Source: Bugula neritina (lineage: Eukaryota; Animalia; Bryozoa). From it: a stretch of 64,000 nt of DNA. Every line of letters begins with the position of its first letter. Position 1 is the first letter of the stretch. The stretch lies in the NCBI GenBank assembly GCA_964035545.1, contig OZ037769.1, positions 868,001 through 932,000 on the forward strand. Direction: 5' to 3'. Below the pieces are notes generated by a model. That model worked only from the letters and a program-made list of their open reading frames with translations, was not told where the DNA came from and did no database searches. Positions 20,409 through 64,000 of this stretch are shown piece after piece. A program made the translations under genes and the position numbers.

Positions 20409-21042
20409 CTTGATCTCTTTCTGTTTCGTCTGTCTGACCTCGGTGACCTTGAACGGGATCGTCTACGATCTCTAGAATGGAAGTGTAGAAGAGGTCATAG
20501 TGTAATAGAAAATAAAGTGTCATCAAATGCATTAATATAACTCCACATAAACCTGTTGCCAGGAGCACTGAAGGTTCACCATTTCTCTCTCAGAATGACA
20601 GGAAATGACATCACCGGATAATGAACACTCGGCAAACTTGATATCTACTAACCTTCTGCCTCTATCTCTACTATTCCCACGTCTCCGTCGGTCACGTGAC
20701 CTGCTTCTACGCCTCTCTCTACTTCCTGGCCTTCTCCCTCTGGAATAATCAATAGCCCAATAATCAATAGTTATTTGCAAAACTCGATACCATTCAATAA
20801 TGTGCAATTAGCAATATACAATCATCAATATTATTATTCAATAATATTATTCAGTATTAATATAATATACAACAATAAATACAAAATAATTTTTCTCCAC
20901 AGGTATTGTAACTCAAAATATTAATGAAAACTAAAATATGATACAATGTACTATGCAAATAGGATAATATATATACAGTAAAATATATACATTATAATAT
21001 ATACACAGCATTATATCTACAGGATAATATATATAATGTATA

Positions 21043-21113
<71 letters not shown>

Positions 21114-28938: not shown

Positions 28939-31900
28939 TCAGATGACTGGTGATGTCATATCCTGTCTGTTCTCATAAAGAGGAACTGTTGTGTTCAGTT
29001 GAAGTTGTTCATATGCTGATGATGGAGAGGTGGTGAGCTGCTCGTAAGTGTTGGTGGGAGGATTTGCTGAGTTTGAGGGTCGAGTAGACACAGGTTCTTC
29101 ATATACTTCATGTTTATCAGATGGGGTGTCTCTACAGGGCAGACTACTTCTTTTCAAGTAGAGAATAATACTACCCAGTGTAACCACTGCTAGTACCAGA
29201 ACTACCACCACTCCAATCAAACCATCTAAACACACAAATAATTTACAGTTGATAATTGCAGGTCAAAATTAGCAAAGAAATTATGCTTAGACAAGGCAAT
29301 ATGTATAAATAAATTTGTGCGACCAAAAATGTTCAGAGTAGAACATATCTACTTGACAGATTATAAAGTTTTACAAGACAAATCAATTGTATAGATTTAC
29401 CATTGTATAGTAATGCTGTCAGAGAACTGAAAATTAAGTTGTTCATTGCTGAGCATTACTTGGGTTTAGGTAACTTATCAGTTGTAGTCAATTGCAATAT
29501 TTCGTCAATACAATCACATCTCATATATACAAGCTCACCAATATAATATTTATAAATTTGTTTATAAAGACCGTTATGGTTTGTCACAAACTACTTCCAT
29601 CCGCAATGTATTATTGTACACCTGTGCGGAAATGCAAACTATATAAAACTGTTTTAATTCAGCTCGCTAGAAGTTAAAATAAAAAAACGTGCTCGCTAAA
29701 TATTACATGGTAATAAGCCAATTAGATCAAACACACACGAGCGTGTCGCACTTCTCACTCAGCATGTTAGACACTTGAAAATCCGCACGCAACGTCCAAT
29801 TTTTGAGCTAAATAGCTTTTCTCGCACGTCACGCTCGAGCAAAACGCGTCGTGTGGCCCTACAGTAACAATAGTTTACCAGTGTCACTTACCTCTTTGTG
29901 ACTGAACAGGGAAATGGCTGTTTCCTGAAACTGCAGAAACTTTACCATCTTTGACCAACAAACAACCAGGGTCATGTGACCAGTTACCAGATTCTGTACA
30001 GACATGATCTGTAGTCTTAGTATAACCAATATCACATGAGTAGAGTAGATTATCTCCTCTGTAATATCTGTCTGTCTGTATGTCTCCGTTAGTTAGATTT
30101 AGTGCTGTAGGGTCACACTCAACTGTAAGAATAACCACGGCCACATATATGTATTGTATATACTCCTCAAAGCTGTATTACCATACAACTACAGTTTGAT
30201 GGATGTATATTATTGAAATTAGTCTAAATAATCTTACCAGTTTCAGAACATTCTGGAACACTGGACCAACTACCATCATACTGACATTGGATAACACTCG
30301 GATTTGTTTTCTTGTAACCATAGTAACAATTATACTGTAGAACTTCTTGGTAGAAATATGTGTGAGTTATCCCCCCTTTAGATGTCACATAAGTAGTTGT
30401 TGTGTTGAGAAACAAATCACTAATCTCACATTCCACTGAATAAAAAACAGCAAAGTTTTTTTGCATAATTGCATTGAGACATTATGCTATATTCATGATA
30501 TATTATAGCACAACTATATAGTATAGATATATACCTATTGTACATGTTGAAGATATATTACTCCATATCCATGGTATAATATTACTATATACATATACCT
30601 GGTGTACATGTTAGAGATATATTACTCCATATCCATGGTATATTATCTGTATCAGTAGAACTACATCTAGATACAACTTCTTCTATTCCATTTCTACTTT
30701 CATATCCTTTTATACACTCATATACTGTTGTATGAGTATCAGTCTTAGTTTTAGTAGTAAACTCAACATCTCTCGGCTCTTCTGTACAGTAGGGGACTAA
30801 AAAAGATATTTAAAAGTACTAGTTTGAATTATTAGAATACAATTAGAAGTATTATACTCAGGTATTAGATGAAGTCTATATAATATAATACTTATCATGC
30901 AAGCTTGTGCTATAAATATATACCTGGAATACATTTGATCTCTGATTGGTTGACCCACTTAGCCTCTGTACCATCTACATTACATTCAGAAGTTGAGTTA
31001 TACTTCAACTGATAGTCAGTATCTTCACAAGAATAGTTTATTATCGTACCAGGAAACCAGGGAGATTTAGTAGATGGAGTACTTGTCACATGATCTATTT
31101 CAGGTTTATCTCCACATGTCAGTACTGTGAAACATACAAAATAACATGCAGCAAGATAAACTATAATTAGTCTTATATAATATGTTTTAAAAAGAAAATT
31201 TCTCATTGGTTTGATCAGCCTAATTTCTTGCTCTGATTCTTTGCTTCTCTCACTCACCTGTAAACTGGATCATAAAGAATACTCCCTCTACATCTCCAGA
31301 TACAGGATCTGGTTCTTGTTCATATCTCACAGATAGTTGATTGTTTGTAGAGTTTATGTTATGTAGATATCCATCAGGGAAGTTAGCAAACTCCTGATTA
31401 TCAATAAACCAGAAGTCCTCTTCGAAATCATCTGTCACAATAATAAAATCAAACCTAACATAGTGAGCTGCACTTGGTAGGTTTGATATTGTAAACTCAC
31501 AGGATGGTAATGGCTGTTTATTAATTGTATAAGAGCTGGTGAATATTCCAGTCAACTGTTCAACTTGAAGTCTGTCTGGTATCTGAATATCTTCACCACA
31601 TGATGTCACTGTAACAGAAATTATGCATCCATTTTCTAATTGCTCAATTTGGTAATGCTGTATATATTAGCATAAAACATTAATTTCTTGCACAGGTTAG
31701 CTTTACCTGTAGTATGTACCTGTTGAGAAGAACTCCAAATTGAATCCTGTCATGTTGCTGAGAGTAGAAACTGATAATACAGACGGTTCTTGAGTGAACT
31801 TCTGTATTATACCTTCAGGTCTTGTAGAGTCAATACAGTATGTTGTACCATCTATTTGTATTTCTGTGCAAAAGTATCCTTCAAAATATTTATACCCAAC

Positions 31901-32266
31901 TCCTGGTATACTGATATAACTACCAGCAGGTGTTCTCAGAGTTAGACTACATCTAACAGGTGCCCCCTCTATCTCTCTATGTTCTATTATCCCTGCATAT
32001 CCTCTATCAACTGTCACTGTGTTATTATCACATATATTCACTGGTTTAATATCTTGCCCTTTTATCAATATGATGATATAACCACTCAGTAGCAGCAGGA
32101 GTTGTCTTCTGACTGACTGAAACAAGAACGTTTAATATTAGTGTATATACACTTCTACATTTTGTACAGAAAAACTCAACCAAACTCTATGCATGACTAA
32201 CCCTTTTGCACTGCTGATCCTACTAACTAATATCGGCATACTGTACATACACTGTGTACTTACCAT
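28939..32266 (-). CDS. Receptor paralogue 1: SP - CUB-like x2 - CCP x4 - TM - ITAM-type tail (class A), ~621 aa
   Basis: Exons 32264-32266 (ATG|GTAAGT), 31720-32116, 31258-31608, 30924-31124, 30599-30796, 30238-30435, 29892-30122, 28939-29225 join in frame. Signal peptide MSVRRQLLLLLSGYIIILIKG; CCP pattern C..Y.C..GY....C...G.WS..P.C; TM GLIGVVVVLVLAVVTLGSIILYL; tail YEQL-x7-YEQL. Confidence 0.85.
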
Positions 32267-33969
32267 TATATTGAAGGTACTCTGTAAGTAGGTAGTTTAT
32301 GTATATAGCTGTGATGTGTTCACCTTGTGTAGTATCTTATACACAGTATAGACTTATATATTCCCAATAATACTAGTCAGGGAGTAAAGTATAGTCTATT
32401 ATCACAAGTCAAATACTTCAGTATATATACTTGTGATTATAGATATACTTCCTTGTAGAAAGATAAATAATGTTATCACAATGATTATATTCAACTAGAT
32501 ATATGAACACCTTCACTCTAATCATTCATTCTATAGTCATATACATAGTTATCATACAATACAATATCAAGGTATATTACGTACTTCATACATGGAGGTA
32601 TACCTCTTTAGTGTTTAGTAGATGGGCTCTGCTGGTTATTCATCAACTTCTAACTGCAATTAACAATGAATTTAGAAGCCTTTCACCAAAAGGTGTAGGC
32701 ATAAGATTTAATACAATTTAAAACCATTTAGATTACCCTTTATTGTTTAAGAATTAAAAGCTACCAAAGTTACCACTGGAAAGCAATTAGGATGTACTCA
32801 TGTCTATATATTATTTGTTTTGTATAAAAGGAATAAAATAATAGTTAAGTGTTTTCTCAATGTTTATAACCAACTGCAACTGTGACAAACTAATATTTTA
32901 AAGCATACAATTAAATATAAGCACACTTTTATGCATGAATTCAACAACCTCTTGTTTAAAAAGCATACTGTAGCAGTCTCGTTTCAATTTGTAAAAAGTA
33001 GAAAATTCATTAAGATTTCTGAATTTTAAAATCTACAAAATGTATAGGCTCTGGCAAGGTCAAGGTCAAGTGAAGGGCAAACTTATGACTAGATAGGAAA
33101 CAAATAAATAATTAGAAGATATTTACTTGGAAGTTCATGCAGGAGTCCCAATATTTCCAATACCAGCAAGCAAGATGAGAGAGTATATTGTTCACAAAGT
33201 ATACAATACAGTTTACTGGGTGTATCTTAATTTATTTATATTTTAAAGGTGAATTGTTTCAATACAAGTAAAAAGTTCAGCTGTTTCTCTATTTATATAT
33301 TGTATTCCGTAGGTAGATGTTGTACAATATTAGTGTATATATTCCGTAGGTAGATGATACATGGTCTGACAGCATGGCCTTACGCAGGTACACATCTATT
33401 ACACTCATTTCTGACAAAACATAAAATTATACTACAACAGCAACTCAGTAACAACAGCTTTCCACACATGATATTAATGAATATTTTTGTCATTTGATTA
33501 TAGCTGAATATCAAGTAAACTCTTCAAGGCTCTAGATTTATGCTAGATCAGAGAGTATGATATAATTGTTACGGCAATGATATAATACAGCATGCAGAGA
33601 GATAGCTAATATTTATTAAGGAGAGAATAACTCCGTACATGTTAGTTTAAAGTTGTGTTTATACATCTTTTGAATCTCAACTCGGCCAAATTGAATTTCT
33701 GACTGAAAATCGTGAAGGTATAAAGGCAACTTTACTCTAGAGAGCAGCTCTCTTGATATTAACTATAAATGTCATTACTGAAAGCATAACTGAAACTTGT
33801 ATCTACTAAAGACAAGAGAGTATAATAATTATAATCTTTATGCAAGGAAATAAAACATACAGTGAAAAAATCTCTACTATAAAGTAACATTGTGAATTTG
33901 ATACATGTTGTATGAATAAAGGTTTATGATGCTCACGATTCCTCTCTATATTAGTTATTGTCTCAGGAG

Positions 33970-36900
33970 TTATGCCACCTTAGTTGATGGCAAATTGCTG
34001 ATGCCCACACCTACGAACTCGTAAGTGTTGGTGTTGTTGAGAGAATTTGCTGAGTTTGATGGTCGAGTAGACACAGGTTCTTCATATACTTCATGTTTAT
34101 CAGATGGGGTGTCTCTACAGGGCAGACTACTTCTTTTCAAGTAGAGAATAATACTACCCAGTGTAACCACTGCTAGTACCAGAACTACCACCACTCCAAT
34201 CAAACCATCTAAAACATGTCATGTGATTTATAAAATGTAACACAAAATAGCAAAAGTGAAAGTTTGACAGAGCTCAAAAGAATAGCACAGAGAATGTATA
34301 AATAAAATTTATAAATAAAGTGCGGCTTAATTAGTCGTTATTGAATAAAACAAAGTTATTGCTGGTAACAATGTTTGGATTTTAAAAGTGAGTCAGTTTA
34401 ATTAACCCAGAATAACATCTTTGTTTTAGTTACAATGGTCTCAATTAATTTTCCCTGAATCTGAATATTGTTTATTGTATTTCTAAAGATTTATTTGCTA
34501 TACCAACTGTAGTGGTGTAATAATAGTGCGCCTGCTGTAACCCAGAGTTCTCGGGTTCGAATCCCAGTGGGGGTAAAAGTTTTATGCTATCTCATTGGTT
34601 TGTCAGATTATCTTCTGGCTCCAAGAGTTGGTGAAACTAATTTAATGTGTCTACTAGCTGCTCATTGTATTAATTAGAAATTTAATTTTTACCTTCAACA
34701 ATCAATTTAACAGCATCAAATACCTCTTTGTGACTGAAGGTAGAGCTTGCTCTGCTCTAAGACTTTAAGACGTTTACCATCTTCAACCAACAAACAATCA
34801 GGGTCATGTGACCAGTTACCAGACTCTGTACAGACAGGATCTGTAGTCTTAGTATAACCATCATCGCATGAGTAGAGTAGATTATCTCCTCCGTAATATC
34901 TGCCTGTCTGTAAGTCTCCGTTACTTAGAATCAGTATTGTAGGGTCACATTCAACTATCGAAATAATGGAAAGCACTACTATACTTTAAGTTACTCAGCA
35001 ATCATAGTTTTGCAGTTTTTAAAAATTTGATTAAAAATACGCTGCTTATTAAAATATTAGTAACTATTCGTAACAATCGTATAGTATTGTATCAGATAAT
35101 AATGCGATTTGTGTGCAAAGGGGAGGTTATATACTTGCTTACAATAATATTATAATTTAGTATATAAAATTAAAATATACAGTTTTAGCTTATATACAGG
35201 AGTACATATATCAATTATGAACACATAATTGTTTGCAGTATATTATTACTATATATATACATATACCTGGTGTACATGTTAGAGATATATTACTCCATAT
35301 CCATGGTATATTATCTGTATCAGTAGAACTACATCTAGATACAACTTCTTCTAGTCCATCTCTACTCTCATATCCTTCTATACACTCATATACTGTTGAA
35401 TGAGTATCAGTCTTAATTTTATTAGTAAACTCAACATTTCTTGGCTCTTCTGTACAGTAGGGGACTAGAAAATACAATTATAAGTATTATATTCAGATAT
35501 TAGAGAAAGTCTATATATAATCCTAATTATACAGCCTTGTGTTATGAAAACATACCTGGAATACATCTGATCTCTGATTGGTTGATCCACTTAGCCTCTG
35601 TACCATCTACTTTACATTCAGAAGTTGAGTTATACTTCAACTGATAGTCAGTATCTTCACAAGAGTAGTTTATTATGGTACCAGGAAACGAGGGAGATTC
35701 AGTAGATGGAGTACTTGTCACATGATCTATTTCAGGTTTATCTCCACATGTCAACACTGTAAAAGTACACAGAAGTATGAGCTCATATGCGGCAGACAAT
35801 CTGCATCTTCAAAATCTGAAATAGTTTTAATTGTAGTTTTCGGAATATAATATGTTTTCCATAATGATATTTCGGTAGTGTCTTCACGCAAAACTTATTT
35901 ACTTTGCACTGCTCACTCACCTGTAAACTGAATCATAAAGAATACAGGCTCTACATCTCCAGTAGTAGGATCTCCCTCATTTTCATATCTCACAGAGAGT
36001 TGGTTGTTTGTAGAAATTATGTCATGTGGATATCCATCAGGGAAGTTAGCAAACTCCTGATTATCAATAAACCAGGAGATTCTGGATGATTCTTCAAGCT
36101 CAGTAATAATACTAAACTTAACATAGTGAGCCTCACTTGGTAGGTTTGATATTGTAAACTCACAGGATGATAATGACTGTTTATTAGTTGTATAAGAGCT
36201 GGTGAATATTCCAGTCAACTGTTCAACTTGAGGTCTGTCTGGTATCTGAATATCTTCACCACAGGATGTCACTGTAACAAAAATATGTCTACATATATTG
36301 AACATATATACTACCTTTGCCACAAAGTGAAATGGTCTTCACAGCTTGCTAGAAAACCTTTTTCATCAGGGCTCTTCTCACAAGAATAGCAAACATCAAC
36401 CCTCCTGTTATATACCAATGGACTTTATAAAGTGTTCCTAATAATATCTTACTAATTTGGTGTAACACATGTCTGATATCAAATATACTCGCTATGGTAT
36501 GATATATCCTACAACCTACAACCTAGATGCGTTATTTCTTAATGTTGATTAATCTATGTCCACCAGTCAATAGATAATTGATATTTCTTATATTCCAAAT
36601 GCCAATAAGGTCTGCTGAATATACTGTAAATATATATTGTGTTTAGGTAAGTTGAAGACATAACAAAAGTCAAAACTGAGGGCGACACTAGCTGAGACAG
36701 CAGAATTGGCCATCTGCAAACTGGCAAAATTTCATTGCTACTTCAAAAACTACTGTTTTTCAGTTTCCCTTTAAATATCTTCGTTATGTAAAATTAAAGT
36801 TAAAACTTTGCAATAAAAACATGAAATGCAGTTACGCTGCTAAATAACAGCACTTTTTAATGGTTAGGTGTTCCGCCATTTTGTCACATATACTATAACG

Positions 36901-37310
36901 TACTCGTATGCTCTCACTATACACAGCAGTGATTTACTAGTGCTGTTGGGTTGAAAGTCGGCTGCATTTTTAAAACTATAGATAAATAAGTTTGAGTTGC
37001 TGTTCACTGCTACAAATTATCTTCCAATATTCTTACACTGCCTGGAGGGTGGTGGGGGTTATTAAATGGCTGGTATCACCATTGTATAATATAGTAATTT
37101 GACACATTGAAACACTAATTTAATCATTGTCATATTATTCTACTGCAAGAGGTCAGTACATTGTTCTTATAGAGTTATATAATATATAGAGAGGTGAATG
37201 GAATGAGGCTTTAATAAACCAGCCTTGAATGTTTGAATACAAGATTAACATATAGCGAAAAATATTTTATGAAAACTACATTCTTTCCTAACATATTCAT
37301 CTAGCTATAT

Positions 37311-37381
<71 letters not shown>

Positions 37382-38095
37382 CATGTCACTCAATTTACAA
37401 AATACAAAACTTTTTGCACTTTTGCACCAAAATTTTGCTCATTCAATTAATTTTCCGCTAACTATTATAACGAAAAACTTCATAGTATTTGCATTTCCTT
37501 CAGACAACAAAACTAGCCAAAGATACATAAATATATATTAATATTTACCTGTTGAGAAGAACTCCAGGTTAAATCCTGTCATGTTGCTGAAAGTAGAAAC
37601 TGATAATACAGACTGTTCTTGGGTGAACTTCTGTATTATACCAGGTTCTGTAAAGTCAATACAGTATGTTCTACCATCTATCTGTATTTCTGGACAAATA
37701 GCACCTTCAGCAGCTACCTCAACTCCTGGTATACTGATATAACTACTTATAGCAGGTGCTCTCAGAGTTAGACTACATCTAACAGGTGCTCCCTCTATCT
37801 CTCTATGTTCTATTATCCCTGCATATCCTCTATCAACTGTCACTGTATTATTATCACACATATTCACGGGTTTAATATCTTGTCCTTTTATCAATATAAC
37901 GATGTAACCACTCAGTAGCAGCAGGAGTTGTCTTCCGACTGACTGAAACAAAAACGTTTAATATTAGTATATATATACACTTCTACATTTTGTCCCGAAA
38001 AACTGAATCAAATACTATAATGTATGATTCCCTTATGCACTGTTGATCTTACTAACTAATATCAATATAATGTACATACACTGTGTACTTACCAT
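33970..38095 (-). CDS. Receptor paralogue 2: SP - CUB-like x2 - CCP x3 - TM - short tail (class B), ~538 aa
   Basis: Exons 38093-38095, 37549-37942, 35921-36271, 35556-35756, 35267-35464, 34724-34954, 33970-34208. Lacks the third CCP exon; tail VYEEP...TYEFV...STKVA. Confidence 0.82.
34507..34640 (+). mobile_element. tRNA-derived SINE-like element in the last intron of paralogue 2
   Basis: A-box-like TGGTGTAATAA, B-box GGTTCGAATCC and tRNA-like loop CTGTAAC, followed by a non-tRNA body; second copy at 49711. Confidence 0.6.
37315..37380. repeat. (TA)n microsatellite
   Basis: About 33 TA units; absent at the equivalent site of paralogue 5 (~52395). Confidence 0.9.
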
Positions 38096-39472: not shown

Positions 39473-42400
39473 TTAAATATTTTCATAAGCTGATGATTCT
39501 AGCTGCAGCTTTTCATATGTTGGTGCAGGAGCTCCGTTGTTTTGTAACTTTTCATAAAGAGAACTTTCATTGTTTACAGGGTTGCCATTGGTTACTGATG
39601 TAGACGTGTCCATTTCCTCATAGTTGTGAGTAGCTGAGTTCACTCTGGGAGAGAGTTGAGTAGACATGGGTTCCTCGTACACATCAGGGTCAAAAAGTGG
39701 GTGGGTTGTACAGGGCAAACTATCTCTTTTCAAGTAGAGTATTATAATACTGATTGTAATCACAGCTACAGGTACTGCTATGGTCAGAGCAATGAGACCT
39801 CCTGGAAAGAAGTTAATGTTAAGTCTACATAAACATGTGCAAATTCAACAAATTTATATTCTGTAGACAGCTACTGAACTCTAGTGAGAGGGTATGTAAT
39901 ATATTCTGTAAACAGCCACTGAACTCTAGTGAGAGAGTATATAATATATTCTGTAGACAGCCACTGAACTCTAGTGAGAGAGTATATAATAGATAAAATA
40001 GAAGAAACAAGAACTTACCACTGAGTGGCACAATCTTTTCATCTATGGTAGTAGAACGAGTCATATCCTCAGATACAACACAACCAGGGTCATGTGACCA
40101 GTTACCAGACTGTGTACAGACAGGATCTGTAGTCTTAGTATAACCATCATCACATAAGTAGAGTAGATCATCTCCTCCGTAATATCTGTCTGTCTGTTTG
40201 TCTCCGTTAGTTAGGGTTAGTGCTGCTGGGTCACACTCAGCTGTTAGGAAATAACAGAGTCTGTTGAAATAATTTTACATATGAAAACATAACAAGCTAT
40301 ATTATAGGAATATTCTATTATATTTGAACCTATATATAATTACCTGTCTCTGTACATTCTGGAACACTGGACCAAGTTTTATCATGTTGACACTGTATCA
40401 CGTCCATGTTTGTTTTCTTATAACCATAGTAACAGACATATGATAGAACTTCTTGGTAGAGATATGTTTGAGTTGTCCCTCCCTTAGATGTGATGTTAGT
40501 AGTGGAATTATTGATCGAGAGATCAGTGATGTCACACTCAACTAAAGTTATTATTAAAAAACAAACTTGCGGAGGACAAGGAACATATATACGTAGTGTA
40601 AAATAAAAAATTATTATTGAAAAACAAACTTTAAATTGGCAATGAAATTTTTCGCAAAGTAATTTAAGTTGTCATTACTAATTTAGTATATTAAATTTAA
40701 ATTATGTAGTTTTGGCTATAAAGATAGTATGTAATATATATACAATATCTACACTCTACAGTGCATTATTACTATATACATATACCTGGTGTACATGTTA
40801 AAGATATATTAATCCATACCCATGGTATATTATTACTATATACATATACCTGGTGTACATGTTAGAGATATATTACTCCATATCCATGGGATATTATCTG
40901 TATCAGTAGAATTACATCTAGATACAACTTCTTCTATTCCATCTCTACTCTCATATCCTTTTATACACTCATATACTGTTGTATGAGTATCAGTCTTTGT
41001 TTTAGTAGTAAACTCAACATCTCTTGGTTCTTCTGTACAGTAGAGGACTACAGAAACAGCATTTGGAAGTATTATATTTAGTTATTAGAAAAATTCTATA
41101 TTATCCTCATTATACAGGTTTATGTTATGAATACATACCTGGAATACATCTGATCTCTGATTGGTTGACCCACTTAGCCTCTGTACCATCTACTTTACAT
41201 TCAGAAGTTGAGTTATACATCAACTGATGGTCAGTATCTTCACAAGAGTAGTTTATTATTGTACCAGGAAACCAGGGAGATTCAGTAGATGGAGTACTTG
41301 TCACATGATCTATTTCAGGTTTATCTCCGCATGTTAACACTGTGTAAAAGTAAAGAGAAAGTTGGCTCGCATATGGCAGACACAGGGAGAAAGTCCAAGA
41401 TATTTCTGAAAAAAGTTTCAGTTGTAATTTTCAGAATCTAATTTTGGCTGTGACGGCTTTATAATATTTTGATGCTTAAAAACTCATTTATGTGCGTTTT
41501 TCACTCACCTGTAAACTGAATCATAAAGAATACTGATTCTACATCTCCAGATACAGGATCTCCCTCATTTTCATATCTCACAGAGAGTTGGTTGTTTGTA
41601 GAGATTATGTCATGTAGATATCCATCAGGGAAGTTAGCAAACTCCTGATTGTCAATAAACCAAGAGGTTCTGGATGATTCCGTAAGCTCAGTAATATCAA
41701 ACCTAACATAGTGAGCTTCACTTGGTAGGTTAGATATTGTAAACTCACAGGATGATAATGACTGTTTCTTAGTTGTATAAGAGCTGATGAATATTCCAGT
41801 CAACTGTTCAACTTGAGGTCTGTCTGGTATCTGAAGATTTTCACCACAGGATGTTACTGTAAAAGAAATATACCTAGCAAAATTTACTTTAATGCTTATT
41901 ATATTTTTAAAGATATTTGCTCTACAGTGTTGAGTGAACCTTATTAAATGGGTTGCTTCTCAATGAACACTGTATAACTGATAACTAACAACACAATAGC
42001 ATATCACAACTACAGGCAAGTTAATCATTCAAACTATTTGTTAGCTAATAGATATTAGTTTTCTGTACTTTGAAAAGATTTACAAGTTTTTTACATTAGA
42101 ATTACTTATATAAATTCAAAGTGCATCCCTTTACCTGTTGTAAAGAACTCCAAGTTGAATCCTGTCATGTTGCTGAGAGTAGAAACTGATAATACAGACT
42201 GTTCTTGAGTGAACTTCTGTATTATACCAGGTTCTGTAGAGTCAATACAGTATCTTCTACCACCTATCTGTATTTCTGGACAGATATCACCTTCTTCAGC
42301 TACAAAAACTTCTGTAATGCTGATATAACTACCAGCAGGTGCTCTCAGAGTTAGACTACATCTAACAGGTGCTCCCTCTATCTCTCTATGTTCTATTATC

Positions 42401-42621
42401 CCTGCATATCCTCTATCAACTGTCACTGTATTATTATCACATATATTCACTGGTTTAATATCTTGTCCTTCTATTAATATGGCTGTGTTATAGATACTCA
42501 ACAGTAGGAGTTGCAGAGGGAAGAACTAAAATATAATTAAATTAAATAATGAAAACTGTAGATTGTAAGATTATATACTAGATACTATCCCATGTGTGTG
42601 TAAATAAGTTTTACTCACCAT
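39473..42621 (-). CDS. Receptor paralogue 3: SP - CUB-like x2 - CCP x4 - TM - multi-tyrosine tail (class C), ~629 aa
   Basis: Exons 42619-42621 (ATG|GTGAGT), 42135-42525, 41509-41856, 41139-41339, 40850-41047, 40344-40541, 40019-40240, 39473-39801. TM GLIALTIAVPVAVITISIIILYL; tail YEEP, YEEM, SLYEKL, TYEKL, SAYENI. Confidence 0.85.
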
Positions 42622-47100: not shown

Positions 47101-47544
47101 ACAGTATGGTGTACCATCTATCTGTATCCCTTTCTGTATCTCTGGACAGATAGCACCTTCAGCAGCTTCATCAACTCCTGGTATACTGATATAACTACCA
47201 GCAGGTGCTCTCAGAGTTAGACTACATCTAGCAGGTGCTCTCTCTATCTCTCTATGTTCTATTATCCCTGCATATCCTCTATCAACTGTCACTGTATTAT
47301 TATCACATATATTCACTGGTTTAATATCTTGTCCTTTTATCAATATGATAATATAACCACTCAGTAGCAGCAGGAGTTGTCTTCTAACTGACTGAAATAA
47401 GAACGTTTAATATTAGTGTATATATATAAACTCCTACATTTTGCACAGTAAAGCTCAACCAAATTCTATGCATGACTAACCCTTTGCACTGCTGATCCTA
47501 CTAACTAATATCAATATAATGTACATACACTGTGTACTTACCAT
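44127..47544 (-). CDS. Receptor paralogue 4 (class A tail, CCP x4), ~623 aa
   Basis: Exons 47542-47544, 46989-47391, 46211-46561, 45835-46035, 45544-45741, 45167-45364, 44755-44985, 44127-44413, all in frame. Confidence 0.85.
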
Positions 47545-49229: not shown

Positions 49230-52200
49230 TTATGCCACTTTAGTTGATGGCAAATTGCTGATGCCCACACCTACGAACTCGTAAGTGTTGGTGTTGTTGA
49301 GAGAATTTGCTGAGTTTGAGGGTTGAGTATACATAGGTTCTTCATATACTTCATGTTTATCAGATGGGGTGTCTCTACAGGGCAGACTACTTCTTTTCAA
49401 GTAGAGAATAATACTACCCAGTGTAACCACTGCTAGTACCAGAACTACCACCACTCCAATAAAACTATCTAAAACATGTCATGTGTTTTATAAAATGTAA
49501 CACAAAATAGCAAGAGTGAAAGTTTGACAGAGCTCAAAAGAATAGCACAGAGAATTTATAAATAAAATGTGGATAATTAATCGTAATTAAGTAAAACAAA
49601 GTTTATGCTGGTAACAATGTTTGAGTTTTAAAAGCTATAGTTAACACAGAATAACGTCTCTGTTTTAGTTAAAATCATCTCAATCAATTTTCCCTGAATT
49701 TGAATGTGAACTGTGGTGGCGTAATGGTAGTGCGCCTGCTGTAACCCAGAGTTCTCGGGTTCGAATCTCAGTGGGGGTAAAAGTTTTATGCTATCTCATT
49801 GGTTTATCAGATTATCTTCTGGCTCCAAGAGTTGGTGAAACTAATTTAATGTGTCTACTAGCTGATTATTGTATTAGAAATTTAAATTTTGCTTTTAACA
49901 GTCAATTTAACAGCAAAAACATACCTCTTTGTGACTGAAGGTAGATGTTGCTCTGCTCTAAGACTTCAAGACGTTTACAATCTTCAACCAACAAACAACC
50001 AGGGTCATGTGACCAGTTACCAGACTTTGTACAAACAGGATCTGTAGCCTTAGTATAACCAATATCACATGAGTAGAGTAGATTATTTCCTCCGTAATAT
50101 CTGCCTGTCTGTAAGTCTCCGTTACTTAGAATCAGTATTGTAGGGTCACATTCAACTATCGAAATAATGAAAAGCACTACTATACTTTAAGTTACTCAGC
50201 AATCATAGTTTTGCAGTTTTTAAAAACTTGATTAAAAATACGCTGCTTATTAAAATATTAGTAACTATTTTTAACAATGCGATTTGTGTGCAAAGGAGAG
50301 GTTATACTTGCTTACAATAATATTATAATTTAGTATATAAAAATTACAACATACAGTTTTAGCTCATACACAGGAGTACATATATCAATTATGAACACAT
50401 AATTGTTTGCAGTATATTATTACTATATATACATATACCTGGTGTACATGTTAGAGATATATTACTCCATATCCATGTATATTATCTGTATCAGTAGAAC
50501 TACATCTAGATACAACTTCTTCTATTCCATCTCTACTCTCATATCCTTTTATACACTCATATACTGTTATATGAGTATCAGTCTTAGTTTTATCAGTAAA
50601 CTCAACATCTCTTGGCTCCTCTGTACAGTAGGGGACTAGAAAAGTACAATTGGAAGCCTTATATTCAGATATTAAAGAAATTCTATATATAATTCTCATT
50701 ATACAGTTTTATGTCATGGATACATACCTGGAATACATCTGATCTCTGATTGGTTGACCCACTTAGCCTCTGTACCATCTATTTTACATTCAGAAGTTGA
50801 GTTATACTTCAACTGATAGTCAGTATCTTCACAAAAATAGTTTATTATTGTACCAGGAAACCAGGGAGATTCAGTAGATGGAGTACTTGTCACATGATCT
50901 ACTTCAGGTTTATCTCCACATGTCAGTACTGTGAAACATACAAAATAACAAGCAGCAAGATAAACTAAAACTAGTCTAATATTATATGTTTTAAAAAGAA
51001 AATTTCTCATTGGTTTGATCAGTCTAATGGTTATATTTATTGCTCCAATTATAATGTGCATTTTCCACTCACCTGTAAACTGAATCATAAAGAATACAGA
51101 CTCTACATCTCCAGATACAGGATCTCCCTCATTTTCATATCTCACAGAGAGTTGGTTGTTTGTAGAGGTTATGTCATGTAGATATCCATCAGGGAAGTTA
51201 GCAAACTCCTGATTATCAATAAACCAGGAGATTCTGGATGATTCTGTAAGCTCAGTAATAATACTAAACTTAACGTAGTGAGCTTCACTTGGTAGGTTTG
51301 ACATTGTAAACTCACAGGATGATAATGACTGTTTATTAGTTGTATAAGAACTGGTGAATATTCCAGTCAACTGTTCAACTTGAGGTCTGTCTGGTATCTG
51401 AATACCTTCACCACGGGATGTCACTGTAACAGAAATATGTCTACATATATTGAACATATATACTACTTTTGCCACAAAGTGAAATGGTCTTCACAGCTTG
51501 CTAGAAAACCTTTTTCATCAAGGCTCTTCTCACAAGAATGGCAAACATCAACCCTCCTGTTATATACCAAGGACTTTATAGAGTGTTCCTAATAATATCT
51601 TACTAATTTGGTGTAACACATGTTTGATATTTAATATACTGGCTATGGTATGATATATCCTACAACCTAGATGTTATCTCTTAATGTTGATTAATCTATA
51701 TCCACCAGTCAATAGATAATTGATATTTCTTATATTGTAAATGCCAATAAGGTCTGCTGAATATACTGTAAATAAATATATTGTGTTTAGGTAAGTTGAA
51801 TCGACATAACAAAAGTCAAAACTGAGGGCGACACTAGCTGAGACTGCAGAATTGGCCATCTGCAAACTGGCAAAATTTCATTGCTACTTCTAAAACCACT
51901 GTTTTTCAGTTTCCCTTTAAACATCTTCTTTTTGTAAAAACTTTGCAATGAAAACATGAAATGCAGTAACGCTGCTAAATAACAGCACTTTTTAATAGTT
52001 AGGTGTTCTGTCATTTTGTCACATATATATATATATATATAACGTACTCTTATCCTTTAACTATACACAGCAGCGATTTTGTTTTACTGTTACAAATTAT
52101 CTTCCAATATTCTTTTACTGCCTGGAAAGGGGGGAAGGGGGGGGGGTGATTAAAAGGCTGGTATCACCATTGTATATAGTAATTTGACACATTGAAACAC

Positions 52201-53080
52201 TAATTTAATCATTGTCATATTATTCTACTGCAAGAGGTCAGTACATTGTTCTTATAAAGTTATATAATATATAGAGAGGTGAGTGGAATGAGGCTTTAAT
52301 AAACCAGCCTTGAATGTTTGAATACAAGATTAACATATAGCGAAAAATATTTTATGAAAACTACACTTTTTCCTAACATATTCATCTAGCTATATTACAT
52401 ACTCAATTTATGAAATACAAAACTTTTTTGAATTAATTTTCCCAATAACTATTATAACGAAATACTTCAAAGTATTTACATTTCCTTCAGACAACAAAAC
52501 TAGCCAAAGATACATAAACATATATATTAATACTTACCTGTTGTAAAAACCTCCAAGTTAAATCCTGTCACATTGCTGAGAGTAGAAACTGATAACACAG
52601 ACTGTTCTGGAGTGAACTTCTGTATTATACCAGGTTCTGTAAAGTCAATACAGTATGTTGTACTATTTATTTGTATCTCTGGACAGATAGTACCTTCTTC
52701 AGCTGCCTTAACTCCTGGTATACTGATATAACTACCAGCAGGTGCTCTCAGAGTTAGACTACATCTAACAGGTGCTCCCTCTACCTCTCTATGTTCTATT
52801 ATCCCTGCATATCCTCTATCAACTGTCACTGTATTATTATCACATATATTCACTGGTTTAATGTCTTGTCCTTTTATCAATATGATAATATAACCACTCA
52901 GTAGCAGCAGGAGTTGTCTTCTGACTGACTGAAACAAAAACGTTTAATATTAGTGTATAATATACACTTCTTCACTTTGTACAGAAAAACTGAATCAAAT
53001 AATATGCATGGTTCCTTTTATGCACTGCTGATTCTGCTAACTAATATCAATATAATGTACATATACTGTGTACTTACCAT
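49230..53080 (-). pseudogene. Receptor paralogue 5 (class B tail, CCP x3), frameshifted in the second CCP exon
   Basis: Exons 53078-53080, 52538-52928, 51073-51423, 50728-50928, 50439-50635, 49925-50155, 49230-49468. The 50439-50635 exon is 197 nt versus 198 in paralogues, turning NIPWIW into NIHGYGVIYL*. Also Cys to Arg in CUB-like 2 (TSCG to TSRG). Confidence 0.75.
49711..49845 (+). mobile_element. tRNA-derived SINE-like element in the last intron of paralogue 5
   Basis: A-box TGGCGTAATGG, B-box GGTTCGAATCT; same position and sequence as 34507-34640. Confidence 0.6.
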
Positions 53081-54433: not shown

Positions 54434-57400
54434 TTAAATATTTTCATAAGCTGATGATTCTACTTGCAGCTTTTCATATGTTGGTGCAGGAATGCTGTTG
54501 TTTTGTAACTTTTCATAAAGAGAGCTCTCATTGTTTACAGGGTTGCCATTGGTTACTGATGTAGACGTGTCCATTTCCTCATAGTTATGAGTAGCTGAGT
54601 TCACTCTGGGAGAGAGTTGAGTAGACATGGGTTCCTCGTACACATCAGGTACAGAAGATGGGTGGGTTGTACAGGGCAAACTATTTCTTTTCAAGTAGAG
54701 TATTATAATAGTGATTGTAATCACAGCTACAGGTACTGCTATGATCAGAGCAATGAGACCTCCTGGAAAGAAGTTAATGTTAAGTCTATATAAACATGTG
54801 TAATTCTAACAAATTTATATTTGCAGTAGACAGCCACTAAACTCTAGTGAGAGAGTATATAATATATAAAATAGAAAAAACAAGAACTCACCACTTAGTG
54901 GCACAATCTTTTCATCTATGGTAGTAGAATGAGTCATATCCTCAGATACAACACAACCAGGGTCATGTGACCAGTTACCAGACTCTGTACAGACAGGATC
55001 TGCAGTCTTAGTATAACCATCATCACATGAGTAGAGTAGATTATCTCCTCTGTAATATCTGTCTAGTGTGATGGCACCATTAGCTAGGGTTAGTGCTGCT
55101 GGGTCACACTCAGCTGTTAAGAAATGACAAAGTCTGTTGAGGTAATTTTACATATGAAAACATGATAACAAGCTAAATTATAGGAATACTCTATTTTATG
55201 CTGATTATTGAAAGCCAGAAATAATGACCTGTTTGTGTACATTCTGGAATACTGGACCAAGTTTTATCATGTTGACACTGTATCACATTCATGTTTGTTT
55301 TCTTGTAACCATAGTAACAGTCATATGATAAAACTTCTTGGTAGACATATGTGTGAGTTGTCCCTCCTTCAGATGTGATGTTAGTAGTGGAAACATTGAT
55401 GGAGAGATCAGTGATGTCACACTCAACTAAAATAATTATTAAAAAGCAAACTTGCAGATGGCAATGAAATATTCTGCAAAAATATTTTAAGCTGTCATTA
55501 TTATAACTTAGTATGTTAAATTTAAAGTATGTGGTTTTGGCTATAAAGATTATAGTATGTAATATATTTACAATATATCTACACTTTACAGTATATTGTA
55601 AATATATACATATACATGATGTGCATGTTGGAGATATATTACTCCATATCCATGGTATATTATCTGTATCAGTAGAACTACATCTAGATACAACTTCTTC
55701 TATTCCATCTCTACTCTCATATCCTTTTATACACTCATATACTATTGTATGAGTATCAGTCTTAGTTTTAGCAGTAAACTCAACATCTCTTGGCTCTTCT
55801 GTACAGTAGGGGACTATAAAATACAATTATAGGTATTATATTCAGGTATTAGATGAAGTGTATATAATATAATACTTATCATGCAAGCTTCTGCTATAAA
55901 TATATATATACCTGAAATACATCTGATCTCTGATTGGTTGACCCACTTAGCCTTTGTACCATCTACTTTACATTCAGAAGTTGAGTTATACTTCAACTGG
56001 TAGTCAGTATCTTCACAAGAATAGTTTATTATTGTACCAGGAAACCAGGGAGATTCAGTAGATGGAGTACTTGTCACATGATCTATTTCAGGTTTATCTC
56101 CACATGTCAACACTGTAAAAGTACACCAAAGTATGAGCTCATATGCGGCAGACAATCTGCATTTTCAAAATCTGAAATAGTTTTAATTGTAGTTTTCAGA
56201 ATATTATAATGTTTTATCTATAATAATATTTTGGTAGTGATTGCATCATAATATATGTCTTCAAGCAGAACTTTTTTACTTTGTTTTGCTCACTCACCTG
56301 TAAACTGAATCATAAAGAATATTTTATCATTATCTCCAGATACAGGATCTCCCTCATTCTCATATCTCACAGAGAGTTGGTTGTTTGTAGAGGTTATGTT
56401 ATGTAGATATCCATCAGGGAAGTTAGCAAACTCCTGATTATCAATAAACCAGGAGATTCTGGATGATTCTGTAAACTCAGTAATCATATCAAACCTAACA
56501 TAGTGAGCTTCGCTTGGTAGGTTTGATATTGTAAGCTCACAGGATGACAATTCTTGTTTATTAGTTGTATAAGAGCTGGTGAATATTCCAGTCAACTGTT
56601 CAACTTGAGGTCTGTCTGGTATCTGAATATCTTTACTACAGGATGTCACTGTATAACAGACATAGCAAAAGTTTAATTTATTGCGTTATTTCTTTAGATG
56701 TGTTCTGCTGCAAATTGTATCACCTAATAAACTTTTTATTGCATATGAACATTTTATTACAAGGTTGTAAGCCTCTCAATTTTGACAATTACTATACACT
56801 TGTTGAGTGGACGTTACTAAATTATTTATTCTGTAATATACACCGTACACATGATACATAATATAACATTTCTTAACTATAACATGTACTTGTTTGTACA
56901 GACAAGTTAACTATACTTTAAAGGACCTATTGGCTAATGGATTTTATACTTTTAAATCCTGGATATACATTTTCTCCAAGAGAAAAAATTACTTACAAGC
57001 AGAGAAAACTTTGTAAGTTAATTTCACCTGTTGTATTATAATGTTTTTACCTGTTGTAACGAATTCCAAGTTGAACCCTACCATGTTGCTGAGAGTAGAA
57101 ACTGATAATACAGACTGTTCTTGAGTGAACTTCTGTATTATACCAGGTTCTGTAGAGTCAATACAATAGCGTGTACCATCCATTTGTATCTCTGAACAGA
57201 CATCAATATCAGCAGCTACAATAACTCCTGGTATACTGATATAACTACCAGCAGGTGCTCTCAGTGTTAGACTACATCTAACAGGTGCTCCCTGTATCTC
57301 TCTATGGGCTATTATCCCTGCATATCCTCTATCAACTGTCACTGTATTATTATCACATATATTCACTGGTTTAATATCTTGTCCTTCTATCAATATGACT

Positions 57401-57538
57401 GTGTAGATACTCAGCAGTATGAGTTGCAGAGGGAGAAACTAAAATATAATTAAATTAGATACGTAATGAAAACTGTAGATTGTAAGATTATATACTAGAT
57501 ACTATCCCATGTGTGTGTAAATAAGTTTTACTCACCAT
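54434..57538 (-). CDS. Receptor paralogue 6 (class C tail, CCP x4), ~629 aa
   Basis: Exons 57536-57538, 57051-57438, 56298-56648, 55912-56112, 55616-55813, 55229-55426, 54892-55113, 54434-54762 join in frame; two weak donors (CAT|GTATAT, CAG|GTCATT). Confidence 0.82.
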
Positions 57539-59034: not shown

Positions 59035-62000
59035 TCAAATGACTGGTGATGTCATATCCTGTCTGTTCTCATAAAGAGGAAGTGTTGTGTTCAGTTGAAG
59101 TTGATCATATGCTGATGATGGAGAGGTGGTGAGCTGCTCGTAAGTGTTGGTGGGAGGATTTGCTGAGTTTGAGGGTTGAGTAGACATAGGTTCTTCATAT
59201 ACTTCATGTTTATCAGATGGGGTGTCTCTACAGGGCAGACTACTTCTTTTCAAGTAGAGAATAACACTACCCAGTGTAACCACTGCTAGTACCAGAACTA
59301 CCACCACTCCAATCAAACCATCTAAAACATGTCATGTGATTTGTAAAGCAGAATGTAAAATAAAAGAAAGAGCAAATGATTGACAATAAGTAGAGTGGAT
59401 AAACCTATAAAACTCGTGAAACATAAAGCAATAGGAAATATTCTACAAAAATAGTTGAACAAAATATACTCAAATTGATTGGCTCTGACTATCCAAATTC
59501 TGGTAAATCCCTCCACTATTATTGTAAATATTAACATAAGGCTGATCAGCTGAAAGTTAAATGTCTTGACTTGACCCAATCAACTGTCAGCTTCAACTCA
59601 GTTAGTAACTGACAATGTCTATAAACTTTTTCAATCTATATACAACTTTAAACAGCATCACTTACCTCTTTGTGACTGGAGGGCTAGATAGCTGTTTCTG
59701 GTGGCTTCAGCAGATTCACCATCATTGACCAACAGACAACCAGGGTCATGTGACCAGTTACCAAACTCTGTACAGACAGGATCTGTAGTCTTAGTATAAC
59801 CATCATCACATGAGTAAAGTAGATTATCTCCTCTGTAATATCTGCCTGTCTGTATGTCTCCATTAGTTAGAGTTACCAATATTAAGGGGTACACTCAGCT
59901 GTAAGAATAACCACATATATTGTATACTCCTCAAAGCTGTGTTACCATACAACTATACAGTTTGATGAATGTTTATTATAGACATGAGTCTAAATAATCT
60001 TACCAGTCTCAGAACATTCTGGAACACTGGACCAACTACCATCATACTGACATTGGATAACACTCGGATTTGTTTTCTTGTAACCATAGTAACAATTATA
60101 CTGTAGAACTTCTTGGTAGAAATATGTGGGAGTTATCCCCCCTTTAGATGTCACATAAGTAGTTGTTGTGTTGAGAAACAAATCACCAATGTCACATTCC
60201 ACTGAATAAAAAACACAAGAGATTTCTTGTATTAATCATTGAAACATTATCCTATATTCATGGTATATTATTACGCTATATATATTATTACTATATTATA
60301 TAGATATACCTGGTATACATGTTAGAGATATATTACTCCATCTCCATGGTATATTATCTGTATCAGTAGAACTACATCTAGATACAACTTCTTCTAGTCC
60401 ATCTCTACTCTCATATCCTTTTATACACTCATATACTGTTGAATGAGTATCAGTCTTAATTTTATTAGTAAACTCAACATTTCTTGGCTCTTCTGTACAG
60501 TAGGGGACTAGAAAATACAATTATAAGTATTATATTCAGATATTAGAGAAAGTCTATATATAATCCTAATTATACAGCCTTGTGTTATGAAAACATACCT
60601 GGAATACATCTGATCTCTGATTGGTTGATCCACTTAGCGTCTGTACCATCTACTTCACATTCAGAAGTTGAGTTATACTTCAACTGATAGTCAGTATCTT
60701 CACAAGAATAGTTTATTATTGTACCAGGAAACCAGGGAGATTCAGTAGATGGAGTACTTGTCACACAATCTATTTCAGGTTTATCTCTACATGTCAGTAC
60801 TGTAAAAGTAAAGAGAAAAGGTAGCTGGCATATGGCAGACACAGAGAGAAAGTCTAAGACATTTCTGAAAAAACTTTTAATTTTAGTTTTCATAATTTTA
60901 TTTTGGCAGTGAATGTATTATAATGTAATAAAATAATGTTTCGATGCTTTTAAACTCATTTATGTATATTTCTCAATTTTACAGGCATAGAACAAATAGT
61001 AATGACCTCTCTCACTCACCTGTAAACTGAATCATAAAGAATATTTTATCATTATCTCCATTGACAAGATCTCCCTCATTTTCATATCTCACAGAGAGTT
61101 GGTTGTTTGTAGAGGTTATGTTATGTAGATATCCATCAGGGAAGTTAGCAAACTCCTGATTATCAATAAACCAGGAGATTCTGGATGATTCTGTAAGCTC
61201 AGTAATATCAAACCTAACATAGTGAGCTTCACTTGGTAGGTTTAATATTGTAAACTCACAGGATGATAATGGCTGTTTATTAGTTGTATAAGAGCTGGTG
61301 AATATTCCAGTCAACTGTTCAACTTGAGGTCTGTCTGGTATCTGAATATCTTCACCACATGATGTCACTGTAACAGAAACAGTGCAAAAGAATTATTTTG
61401 CGACTTGCTATTTATTGTACCATTTTTATACCATGTTATGGGTTTGAGCCCGGACAAAAGCCATTGGTGACGTTAGGAAAAGCATTCAGCCATAATTGTT
61501 CCTGTTCCTCATTTAAATAAGTCCTTAGCCTGCTTTAACAAAAACCCTTTCTATCCGAAGTTTCTAACAGAGATATAAACTTTCGTGAGTTTGTTTGGTG
61601 AGACATATGTGCATATAAATTTGTTAGCTATAATACCATAGTGATATAATTCTGAATAAAACCTTTGCATTGCAGGTTGTTGAAATTTATTTCTATAATA
61701 CACTTTAGCGAAATCTAGTAAAATACCCAACTTTATGATACATCCAGAACAATTCACTAAATTAAATTATATTCAAACCAAGAGAAAATTTGTTCAAGGC
61801 TTCGTTTACATAAAACAGACAAGGTGAATCAAAAATTGTCAAGAAATTCCAAAATCAGGATTCGCCTATCAAAAACAAAAGATCCAGCATAAATCCAAAA
61901 CAATTAGTTTGTCTGAACTGGATGAAAATAAGCACTTAAAAGCCAGTAACTAGACCTTAATATGGTTCTATTTATAAAGAGCTATAGTCTATGGTCTAGA

Positions 62001-62801
62001 CCCTCCTATTATGAAACAGTCTACCAGTGAAACTTTTTCAATAAATTATATTCTTTTTATGATCATTTCAGTATAATTTGGGTTACCAGATGATAACAAG
62101 CTATATATCTTTTCAAACTCTGCATTATTGTGTTATTTTTACTCTTTGCAAACAGCTGATTTGAAAAGAAAATAACAATGCAGAGTTTGAAAAAATATAC
62201 ATTTATCAGATAATTCAAATATACATGCAGAAGATAAAATGTTCAACTTCTACCTGTTGTAAGGAAATTCAAAGAAAATCCAATCATGTTGCTGAGAGTA
62301 GAAACTGACAATACAGACTGTTCTTGAGTGAACTTCTGTATTATACCAGGTTCTGTAGTGCCAACACAGTATATTGTACCATTTATCTCTATCTCTGGAC
62401 AGGGAGAGCTTCCTGCAGCTGTATCAATATATGGTATACTGATATAACTACCAGCAGGTGCTCTCAGAGTTAGACTACATAAAACAGGTGCTTCCTTTAT
62501 CTCTCTATGTTCTATTATCCATGCATATCCTCTATCAACTGTCACTGTATTATTATCACATATATTCACTGGTTTAATATCTTGTCCTTCTATCAATATT
62601 ATGATGTAACCACTCAGTAGCAGCAGGAGTTGTCTTCTGACTGACTGAAACAAGAACGTTTAATATTAGTGTATATACACTTCTAAATTTTGTACAGAAA
62701 AACTGAATCAAATACTATAATGCATGGTTCCCTTTTGCACTGTTGATCCTGCTAACTGCGAGTAATATCAATATAATGTACATACACTGTGTACTTACCA
62801 T
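59035..62801 (-). pseudogene. Receptor paralogue 7 (class A tail), frameshift at the start of the fourth CCP exon
   Basis: Exons 62799-62801, 62254-62644, 61020-61367, 60599-60799, 60310-60507, 60004-60201, 59666-59898, 59035-59321. The 59666-59898 exon is 233 nt and reads ECTP* (TAA at 59882-59884). The gene is intact if that exon is skipped. Confidence 0.7.
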
Positions 62802-63983
62802 TGTATTGAAGATACTCTGTAAGTAGATAGTTTATGTACAAGCTGTGATGTGTACACCTAGTGTAGTATCTTATACACAGTATAGACTTATATATTCCCA
62901 ATAATACTAGTCAGGGAGTAAAGTATAGTCTATTATCACAAGTCAAATACTTCAGTATATATAATTGTGAAATATAGATATACATCTTTGTAGAAAGATA
63001 AATAATGTTATCACAATGAATGCTTTATCTTAAGGAATGTATTCATTTATAATAAATAATATGATATAAACCACTTGACTCGATAATCATTCATTTTACT
63101 TATGCAAATAGTTATCATAAAGTGCATTATCAAAGCCTGATATACTTCACACACAGTGTAGATATACTAGTAATGAATAACTACAATAAATTCTAATTAA
63201 CCACTCTAACAACATATATTGTATATATTACTATTGTTTCATGATTACATCCAGTATTCAGCTAGTCATGTGGACAGGAAGTAAACAAAGTACCCAGAAT
63301 GCACTGCAACAGAGCTACTGAGTAAGAGAAATCTCTGGGAGTTTCTATGTCTTTAAACATAATATGTTGTGTTACTAGAAGTTACTTCAGCTTGTTAACA
63401 ATGGATAATAAACAGCTAGATGTTTATTTAAGTATAACTCATAGTAGAGATGAGAGATTGTGTTGTTCACAAAGTATACAATACATGAATAATTATAATA
63501 AATATATTTATATTGAACAGTTGAATGACCAATACTAAAAATAAAATATATATATCAATGCAGAAACAGCTAGTGTATAAATTTATTGATAGCATTAATC
63601 TAATAATAAATAGTAAATGATATATATATATATATATAGAGCAGTAAGAGTTTCTGTAAAGTATGCTATCTATAATCATGTAACTTAGATATCACCTTAA
63701 ATAAAAAGAAGAAGCAGAAGACCCTTTAATGATTTCCAGCAATTTATAGCTTTAAATTACTTGCAGCTAGAAATAGCTAAGTGAGTGTTTTACAAATTAA
63801 AACAGCAAGTTGTAAAAATTTATTACATGCTGTTGAAAATTATACTCATAGCAATGCTAAGAAAAAAGACATTGCTTGCTAAAAATCAAACAAAACTGTG
63901 TTCAATTATTATAAAAAATTCTTGTTTAAAATTGTTGTGAATAAAACTGTCAACCATTACAAAACCTGAATATATTTTATATG

Positions 63984-64000
63984 CTAAATATTTTCATAAG
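63984..64000 (-). CDS. C-terminal codons of an eighth paralogue (class C tail, ...AYENI*), truncated by the window edge
   Basis: Minus strand CT TAT GAA AAT ATT TAG matches the ends of paralogues 3 and 6 (TAAATATTTTCATAAG at 39474 and 54435); the 3' flank is weakly similar to class C 3' flanks. Confidence 0.7.

Follow-up and report, generated by a model that had tools for sequence, protein, structure and literature searches.

In colonial Hydractinia, the Alr genes form a large cluster of single-pass receptors whose two tandem beta-sandwich heads are invisible to standard profiles, and whose diverse tails carry immunoreceptor tyrosine-based activation (ITAM) or inhibition (ITIM) motifs (PMC9546547). 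In Botryllus, fester and FcoR genes (FF and FcoR) lie in multigene clusters with two alternating kinds of neighbour, and their products have a variable N-terminal domain followed by sushi modules, a variable stalk and YxxL-type tails (PMC12582321, PMC12065747). Vertebrate paired receptors, among them CEACAM, Siglec, CD300 and KIR/Ly49, place heads homogenised by gene conversion on different tails and show selection on their binding loops. The genetic basis of self/non-self recognition in bryozoans is not known (PMC3342096). Here we describe a family of candidate receptors in the bryozoan Bugula neritina, met in a 64,000-nucleotide stretch of contig OZ037769.1 (C5 below; assembly GCA_964035545.1, positions 868,001 to 932,000; hereafter the window), in which two divergent CUB domains, a stalk of sushi modules (complement control protein, CCP), a membrane helix and a tyrosine-bearing tail recur gene after gene.

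The Bugula family shares with each of these systems the features just named and departs from them in others. Alr heads are V-set and I-set immunoglobulin (Ig) domains with Fn3, whereas the Bugula order is CUB-CUB and then sushi, and no sequence relationship between the two was found; Alr1 and Alr2 have been mapped to allorecognition and bind homophilically, roles that for the Bugula family are at most candidate ones. The Botryllus receptors also have an Ig head, with ITIM or hemITAM motifs instead of two-tyrosine ITAM cores, and FF and FcoR are two distinct pairing families, whereas Bugula neighbours draw on one pool of heads. Fold searches with the Bugula heads give CUB, not the Ig fold of Alr and FF-FcoR. 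Vertebrate paired receptors use another scaffold, and, unlike them, the Bugula family has no clear pair of activating and inhibitory members.

CUB and sushi modules also meet in SEZ6 and CSMD, which are type I membrane proteins and form the nearest clusters by language-model features to a Watersipora member of the family (score 0.91); the SEZ6 tail carries an NxxY-type motif, a likeness to the NxLY tails described below. SEZ6 and CSMD, however, interleave CUB with sushi, are recognised by Pfam CUB and are conserved genes of low copy number, whereas the Bugula family sets two divergent CUBs before all of its two to four sushi modules, and none of these proteins appeared among its sequence matches. 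The interaction region of C1r, C1s and MASP (CUB-EGF-CUB-CCP-CCP) likewise places a CUB pair before CCP, and MASP CUB2 and C1r/C1s are among the top fold matches, but the Bugula proteins have neither EGF nor protease and are membrane-anchored with a signalling tail. By analogy, the family may work like Alr, FF/FcoR and vertebrate paired receptors while belonging to none of them, its head being CUB and not Ig.

Results

Self-comparison and translated searches delimit seven complete gene units on the minus strand of the window (28939-62801), with start codons 4.5-5.8 kb apart, and the final 17 bases of an eighth gene; three more array genes lie beyond gene 8, outside the window (Table 1). The original prediction, made from the letters of the window, had called a head-to-tail array of at least eight genes, and this is borne out, as is its architecture: all seven units run from a signal peptide (SP) through two CUB-like domains and three or four CCP modules to a transmembrane (TM) helix and a tyrosine-bearing tail. 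Domain searches were run exon by exon, and exons were joined by a local script to check reading frames. Each gene opens with an exon that holds only the ATG, followed by one exon for the SP and CUB1, one for CUB2, three or four sushi exons of about 200 bases each, and a single exon for membrane helix and tail. The introns of intact models are GT-AG without exception, and the module exons are phase 1-1. The ATG-only exon sits 147 bases upstream, 21 of the 22 genes retain it and RNA contigs show it spliced; a first exon near 33138 was dropped, its ATG not being kept in other copies. Seven full gene models had been claimed; seven units are indeed complete, but only five (genes 1, 2, 3, 4 and 6) give open frames after joining, genes 5 and 7 each lacking one base in a short run within a sushi exon. 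These deletions may be real or consensus errors, and since the affected exons are phase 1-1, skipping them would keep the frame. That the copies are an assembly artefact, a possibility raised at the outset, is ruled out by their divergence, 3-18% even in the most similar exons, and by a syntenic sister array in a second genome.

Structure models assign both head domains to the CUB fold, which Pfam does not see. The CUB1 model (predicted local distance difference test, pLDDT, 89) returned CUB domains at Foldseek ranks 1-11 (best E 2.5e-3, prob 1.0), aligned with the CUB domain of TMPRSS6 in VIA-align (Z 8.9, root-mean-square deviation 3.2 over 103), and in the Atlas search likewise ranked CUB domains best. 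For CUB2 (pLDDT 70) the top rows are also CUB, at lower scores (Z 6.5). Superposition on solved CUB domains is what would be expected of a member of the CUB superfamily, whose domains are jelly-roll beta-sandwiches of about 110 residues. Pfam CUB matched neither head exon, nor 30 aligned CUB1 relatives (best E 0.11), nor five full-length relatives, and a sequence search of PDB with the head domains gave no match. The four-cysteine motif by which the heads were first recognised fits CUB1 but not CUB2, which has two cysteines. By inspection of the calcium-site residues, CUB1 is without a conserved Asp in loop L9, and CUB2 has acidic residues in L5 and L9. In the stalk, Pfam PF00084 scores 35.7 bits for sushi module 3 and 28.4 bits for module 4 (cut-off 20.7); the divergent modules 1 and 2 have no Pfam match in the window and keep the four cysteines and the C-terminal Trp.

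The family is transcribed, a point that the original prediction had asked to be checked, and spliced at the predicted joints. RNA-type contigs from two runs of different studies lie on exons, not introns, and their joints match predicted boundaries exactly at 32264-32116, 31258-31124 and 30924-30796; joints between domains 1 and 2 and between last sushi and membrane exon are present as well, and type-a tail sequence is covered. These contigs come from other colonies and were taken at 85% likeness or more, and speak for transcription and splicing of the family, not of each window gene.

Within the 216-Mb genome the family is larger than first claimed: the array stands, with 11 genes, and 22 genes lie on the chromosome arm. 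Domains 1 and 2 were each found 22 times on C5 between 591 and 951 kb (360 kb), in groups of three genes (591-615 kb), eight genes on the other strand (677-714 kb) and eleven genes (897-951 kb), the window being C5 868001-932000. One distant member with both CUB exons lies on C2 (28887163-28888136); the sequence reading left out this member, C5 640-660 kb and C5 740-868 kb, and the family count is at least 22 genes. Seventeen copies form a young group with 72-88% identity in domain 1, and five older copies show 27-64%. In the type-S assembly GCA_010799875.2, five middle-group genes and one first-group gene keep the order seen here. Alignable non-coding DNA differs between the two genomes by 9-15%, and the window genome is therefore probably a sister lineage of the B. 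neritina complex.

Beyond Bugula, one chromosome of Watersipora subatra carries at least three full-length relatives built in this way, two of which lie side by side; in a Watersipora relative Pfam recognises four stretches as sushi. Marine metagenome contigs hold about 40 further divergent domain-1 exons. A metagenome scan for the locus gave no confirmed locus. The best named protein match for a window gene is a B. neritina protein (83%); sequence searches matched no named protein outside Bryozoa, and a full-length profile search returned Watersipora proteins only. Synteny with Watersipora sought through a neighbouring gene gave repeat matches only. In keeping with the original prediction, the searches yielded neither a named family nor a one-to-one orthologue, and a literature search of incomplete coverage turned up no account of it. 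This bryozoan receptor family is thus real, expressed and undescribed.

Variation among the 17 young copies is concentrated in the heads. In domain 1 it peaks in the residues leading up to the third cysteine, and lesser patches follow the fourth cysteine and precede the final strand; the corresponding positions vary in domain 2. The second disulfide of CUB domains joins L5 to L7, and ligand is bound at the odd-numbered loops (PMC8051872); on this layout the variable patches would be L5, L7 and L9, a mapping drawn from sequence and secondary structure and not from superposition. All 17 young copies differ in L5, several by in-frame insertions or deletions (indels) and none by a frameshift, and 35 of 37 L5 sequences from the window genome, the type-S genome and metagenome contigs are distinct. 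We compared site models M1a and M2a, in a home-made implementation with a fixed tree, on the young copies. For CUB1 the likelihood ratio statistic was 43, with omega2 of 6.5 at 4% of sites and all four flagged sites in L5; for CUB2 it was 35, with omega2 of 4.8 and five of six flagged sites in L3, L5 and L9. None of the four sushi exons, which are shorter, gave a significant result. Both CUB domains thus appear to be under positive selection, mostly in loops that bind ligand in other CUB proteins, which is consistent with the lineage-restricted expansion and diversification originally proposed. When the two Bugula genomes are compared, old single-copy members give an omega of 0.17, against 0.93 in the CUB exons of the young ones.

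The head exons have also been exchanged segmentally across the 360 kb and both strands. Exon distance matrices of CUB1, CUB2 and sushi 1 correlate neither among themselves nor with tail type or sub-cluster, sushi 4 being the only exon whose distances follow the tail, and positional counterparts in the two Bugula genomes are not mutual closest relatives in their head exons. The arrangement is that of paired receptors, with similar heads on different tails and head distance independent of tail type and sub-cluster. Synonymous distance between the two genomes is 0.29 for old members (C5 686-700 kb against type-S L023) and 0.105 for young members, the latter no more than between paralogues within the window genome; DNA constraint, gene flow or, in the old block, a deep haplotype might each account for this gap.

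Type-b and type-a tails alternate along the 11-gene array, with two truncated type-a tails in a duplicated triplet. By the Hydractinia Alr consensus, Yxx[L/I]-x(6-9)-Yxx[L/I] (PMC9546547), tail a has an ITAM core with a spacer of 7, and tail b has overlapping cores with spacers of 9 and 6; the core arises in 0.3-0.7% of shuffles (p 0.003-0.007). No core was found in the truncated, NxLY or Watersipora tails. Of the ITAM and ITIM tails in the original prediction, the former hold for five of seven units, genes 2 and 5 having the truncated tail, and the latter hold at most loosely: we found S-x-Y-x-x-L matches that overlap ITAM tyrosines, and the strict form in gene 4 alone, inside its ITAM, whereas no separate ITIM ([I/L/V]xYxx[I/L/V]) occurs in an ITAM-free tail. 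The remaining tail tyrosines resemble Nck/Crk (YEEP), PI3K (YEEM) and Grb2 (YEN) sites. The three genes at 591-615 kb pair young heads with an unrelated tail that spans several exons and repeats NxLY, a PTB-type docking motif; this tail is 45% identical to a Watersipora tail (E 4e-19) and cannot be aligned to type a. Because the NxLY tail is common to Watersipora and ITAMs are absent there, the ITAM tails look like a derived feature of part of the family and the NxLY tail like the older form. One head pool thus seems wired to at least four outputs, namely two ITAM-type tails, a truncated tail and an NxLY tail.

Several other features of the array and its surroundings were recorded. A three-gene block of about 15 kb is duplicated at 87-90% identity (31709-36935/46978-52079, 37442-40588/52428-55472 and 42130-44954/57046-59865); its conserved units consist of the tail of one gene, intergenic DNA and the head of the next, and signal-peptide type tracks the tail type of the upstream neighbour. 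Tandem duplications of 64 bp cover the 3' end of the sushi-2 exon and its donor site at 30522-30646 and 40765-40897, and also at C5 609 kb and 934 kb. The last intron of gene 1 holds about 240 bp of a high-copy dispersed element (29626-29863), other genomic copies of which have an inverted end about 200 bp further on; it looks like half a miniature inverted-repeat transposable element (MITE). At 7028-11716 lies a Ty3/gypsy-type long terminal repeat (LTR) retrotransposon with a 5-bp target duplication and gag, protease, reverse transcriptase, RNase H and integrase domains, its pol frame broken by a stop near 10378; its two 195-bp LTRs are identical, so the insertion is very recent. A LUC7-like splicing factor gene occupies about 20500-26300 on the minus strand, at the 3' flank of the array, with three exons matching Pfam LUC7 and RS-rich exons containing a 24-bp tandem repeat. 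Outside the window, the 591-615 kb group has a peptidase M8 (leishmanolysin-like) gene at its flank in each Bugula genome (C5 about 620-628 kb; type-S stretch L021 1-6596). In Watersipora, the RefSeq model 'beta-2-glycoprotein 1-like' is without its 5' end (L027 10001-42645), and exons for a signal peptide and both CUB domains lie directly upstream of it.

Table 1. Receptor genes of the window and annotated parts of gene 1. Coordinates are window positions; the higher coordinate of genes 1 to 7 is the start codon.
Feature	Position	Strand	Basis
Gene 1, intact, 621 amino acids, four sushi, tail type a	28939..32266	-	gene model and family RNA joints
Gene 1 ATG exon	32266-32264	-	gene model
Gene 1 SP and CUB1 exon	32116-31720	-	gene model
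Gene 1 CUB2 exon	31608-31258	-	gene model
Gene 1 sushi exons	31124-30924, 30796-30599, 30435-30238, 30122-29892	-	gene model
Gene 1 TM and tail type a exon	29225-28939	-	gene model
Gene 1 CUB1 hypervariable loop just before third cysteine, putative L5 by CUB topology	31868..31906	-	name from cysteine topology (PMC8051872)
Gene 1 tail ITAM core, YxxL-x7-YxxL	29002..29046	-	shuffle p ~0.004
Gene 2, intact, 538 amino acids, three sushi, truncated type-a tail without ITAM	33970..38095	-	gene model
Gene 3, intact, 629 amino acids, four sushi, tail type b (five tyrosines, overlapping ITAM cores)	39473..42621	-	gene model
Gene 4, intact, 623 amino acids, four sushi, tail type a, sole strict ITIM match	44127..47544	-	gene model
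Gene 5, three sushi, truncated type-a tail, 1-base deletion in sushi 2 near 50477	49230..53080	-	gene model
Gene 6, intact, 629 amino acids, four sushi, tail type b	54434..57538	-	gene model
Gene 7, four sushi, tail type a, 1-base deletion at sushi 4 start near 59885	59035..62801	-	gene model
Gene 8, last codons and stop (17 bases), tail type b	63984..64000	-	intact 629-amino-acid gene runs past window

Discussion

With variable binding loops, a constant stalk and interchangeable tails, the anatomy of these proteins fits a recognition receptor under an arms race. Our leading interpretation, held tentatively, is that they form a bryozoan-specific, germline-encoded family for non-self recognition that works like the clustered variable receptors of vertebrates. 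We infer its ligand, binding surface, phosphorylation, downstream kinases and immune role as follows. The two CUB domains at the tip would bind, through their odd-numbered loops, a fast-changing ligand such as a microbial, parasite or altered-self surface molecule, and the two to four sushi modules would serve as a spacer. Clustering would allow a Src-family kinase to phosphorylate the tail tyrosines; ITAM tails a and b might then recruit a Syk/Shark-type kinase, and YEEP, YEN and NxLY tails might recruit SH2 or PTB adaptors. Gene conversion and unequal crossing-over may keep the head framework uniform while re-dealing head exons among copies, such that one pool of binding variants could feed several signalling outputs.

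Several observations weigh against this interpretation. The Watersipora relatives show no ITAM, the Bugula ITAMs have no acidic residues upstream, and the tail tyrosines all belong to the generic YE.. class of docking sites. None of the tails is clearly inhibitory, and the two alternating types both carry ITAM cores. A counting test on L5 alone gave a dN/dS (the ratio of nonsynonymous to synonymous change) of 1.6 with p 0.09. Gene conversion and an indel-rich alignment can inflate site-model tests, for which the sushi controls were also shorter; the case for positive selection in the heads is therefore strong but not final.

Among the alternatives, the likeliest, though doubtful, is that the cluster is all or part of a bryozoan allorecognition locus, in which variable CUB heads would recognise, on a colony or larva in contact, either the same variant or a polymorphic ligand, with the tails deciding between fusion, rejection and kin preference. 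Its genomic logic is that of Hydractinia Alr and Botryllus FF/FcoR, from clustering through a variable N-terminal domain and stalk length to tyrosine motifs and alternating tails, and bryozoans do show fusion and kin effects whose locus is not known (PMC3342096, PMC10078279). The near-complete distinctness of the L5 loops would also be expected of it, but the other samples appear to be a sister lineage, and the variants may therefore not be alleles. Nor is there a sign of extreme polymorphism in a 3.5-kb JGI contig that contains a young CUB1 exon and is 100% identical to the type-S reference, unless the two share a colony or clone. Among type-S-like samples the old members show 99-100% identity, and the remaining contigs could represent either alleles or paralogues. 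Bugula, moreover, is erect and not encrusting, and kin preference is not seen in every population (PMC10078279). It is improbable that the family is instead a housekeeping receptor for adhesion or docking to whose head pathogens or parasites bind, with loops that diversify to escape and extra copies that act as decoys or counter-receptors. The old members, conserved, single-copy and under purifying selection, are in line with such a role, the NxLY tail common to Watersipora points to an older signalling role, and homogenised heads on different tails are described as typical of pathogen-exploited paired receptors (PMC5112662, PMC3210942). A conserved surface for an endogenous ligand was not identified, however, and the expansion has full signalling tails, not secreted or tail-less forms.

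A recently amplified, largely redundant family under relaxed selection, with loop variation from drift and gene conversion and with motifs that are incidental docking sites, seems quite improbable. Mean dN/dS is about 0.8-0.9 in CUB1, CUB2, sushi 2 and sushi 4, two of the 11 array genes are frameshifted, and synonymous change is also raised in L5, all as such decay would predict; but the site class with omega of 5-6 is confined to the two CUB exons, CUB1 indels are in-frame, cysteines, splice sites and tail tyrosines are kept, and the family is transcribed. Gamete-recognition proteins often change rapidly under positive selection and evolve in concert, and spermadhesin CUB domains are among the top fold matches, which would suit a role in sperm uptake and compatibility in this sperm-casting animal. 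We consider such a gamete or mate-recognition function very improbable, as spermadhesin is one of many tied CUB matches, and ITAM-like tails and several tail types would not be expected.

To conclude, we return to non-self recognition as the interpretation we tentatively prefer. A bolder reading is unlikely: it would make the 360-kb region the first histocompatibility complex in any bryozoan, or indeed in any spiralian, with a CUB-sushi scaffold of independent origin and hypervariable CUB loops re-dealt by gene conversion among receptors with different tyrosine tails. For bryozoan biology, the family offers a concrete, expressed candidate for self/non-self recognition, with hypervariable loops that can be amplified and genotyped. 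If our interpretation is right, CUB would join the short list of scaffolds (Ig, C-type lectin and leucine-rich repeat) recruited for diversified germline receptors wired to ITAM-like tails, and the family would support the view of an old signalling core whose heads are re-invented in each phylum.

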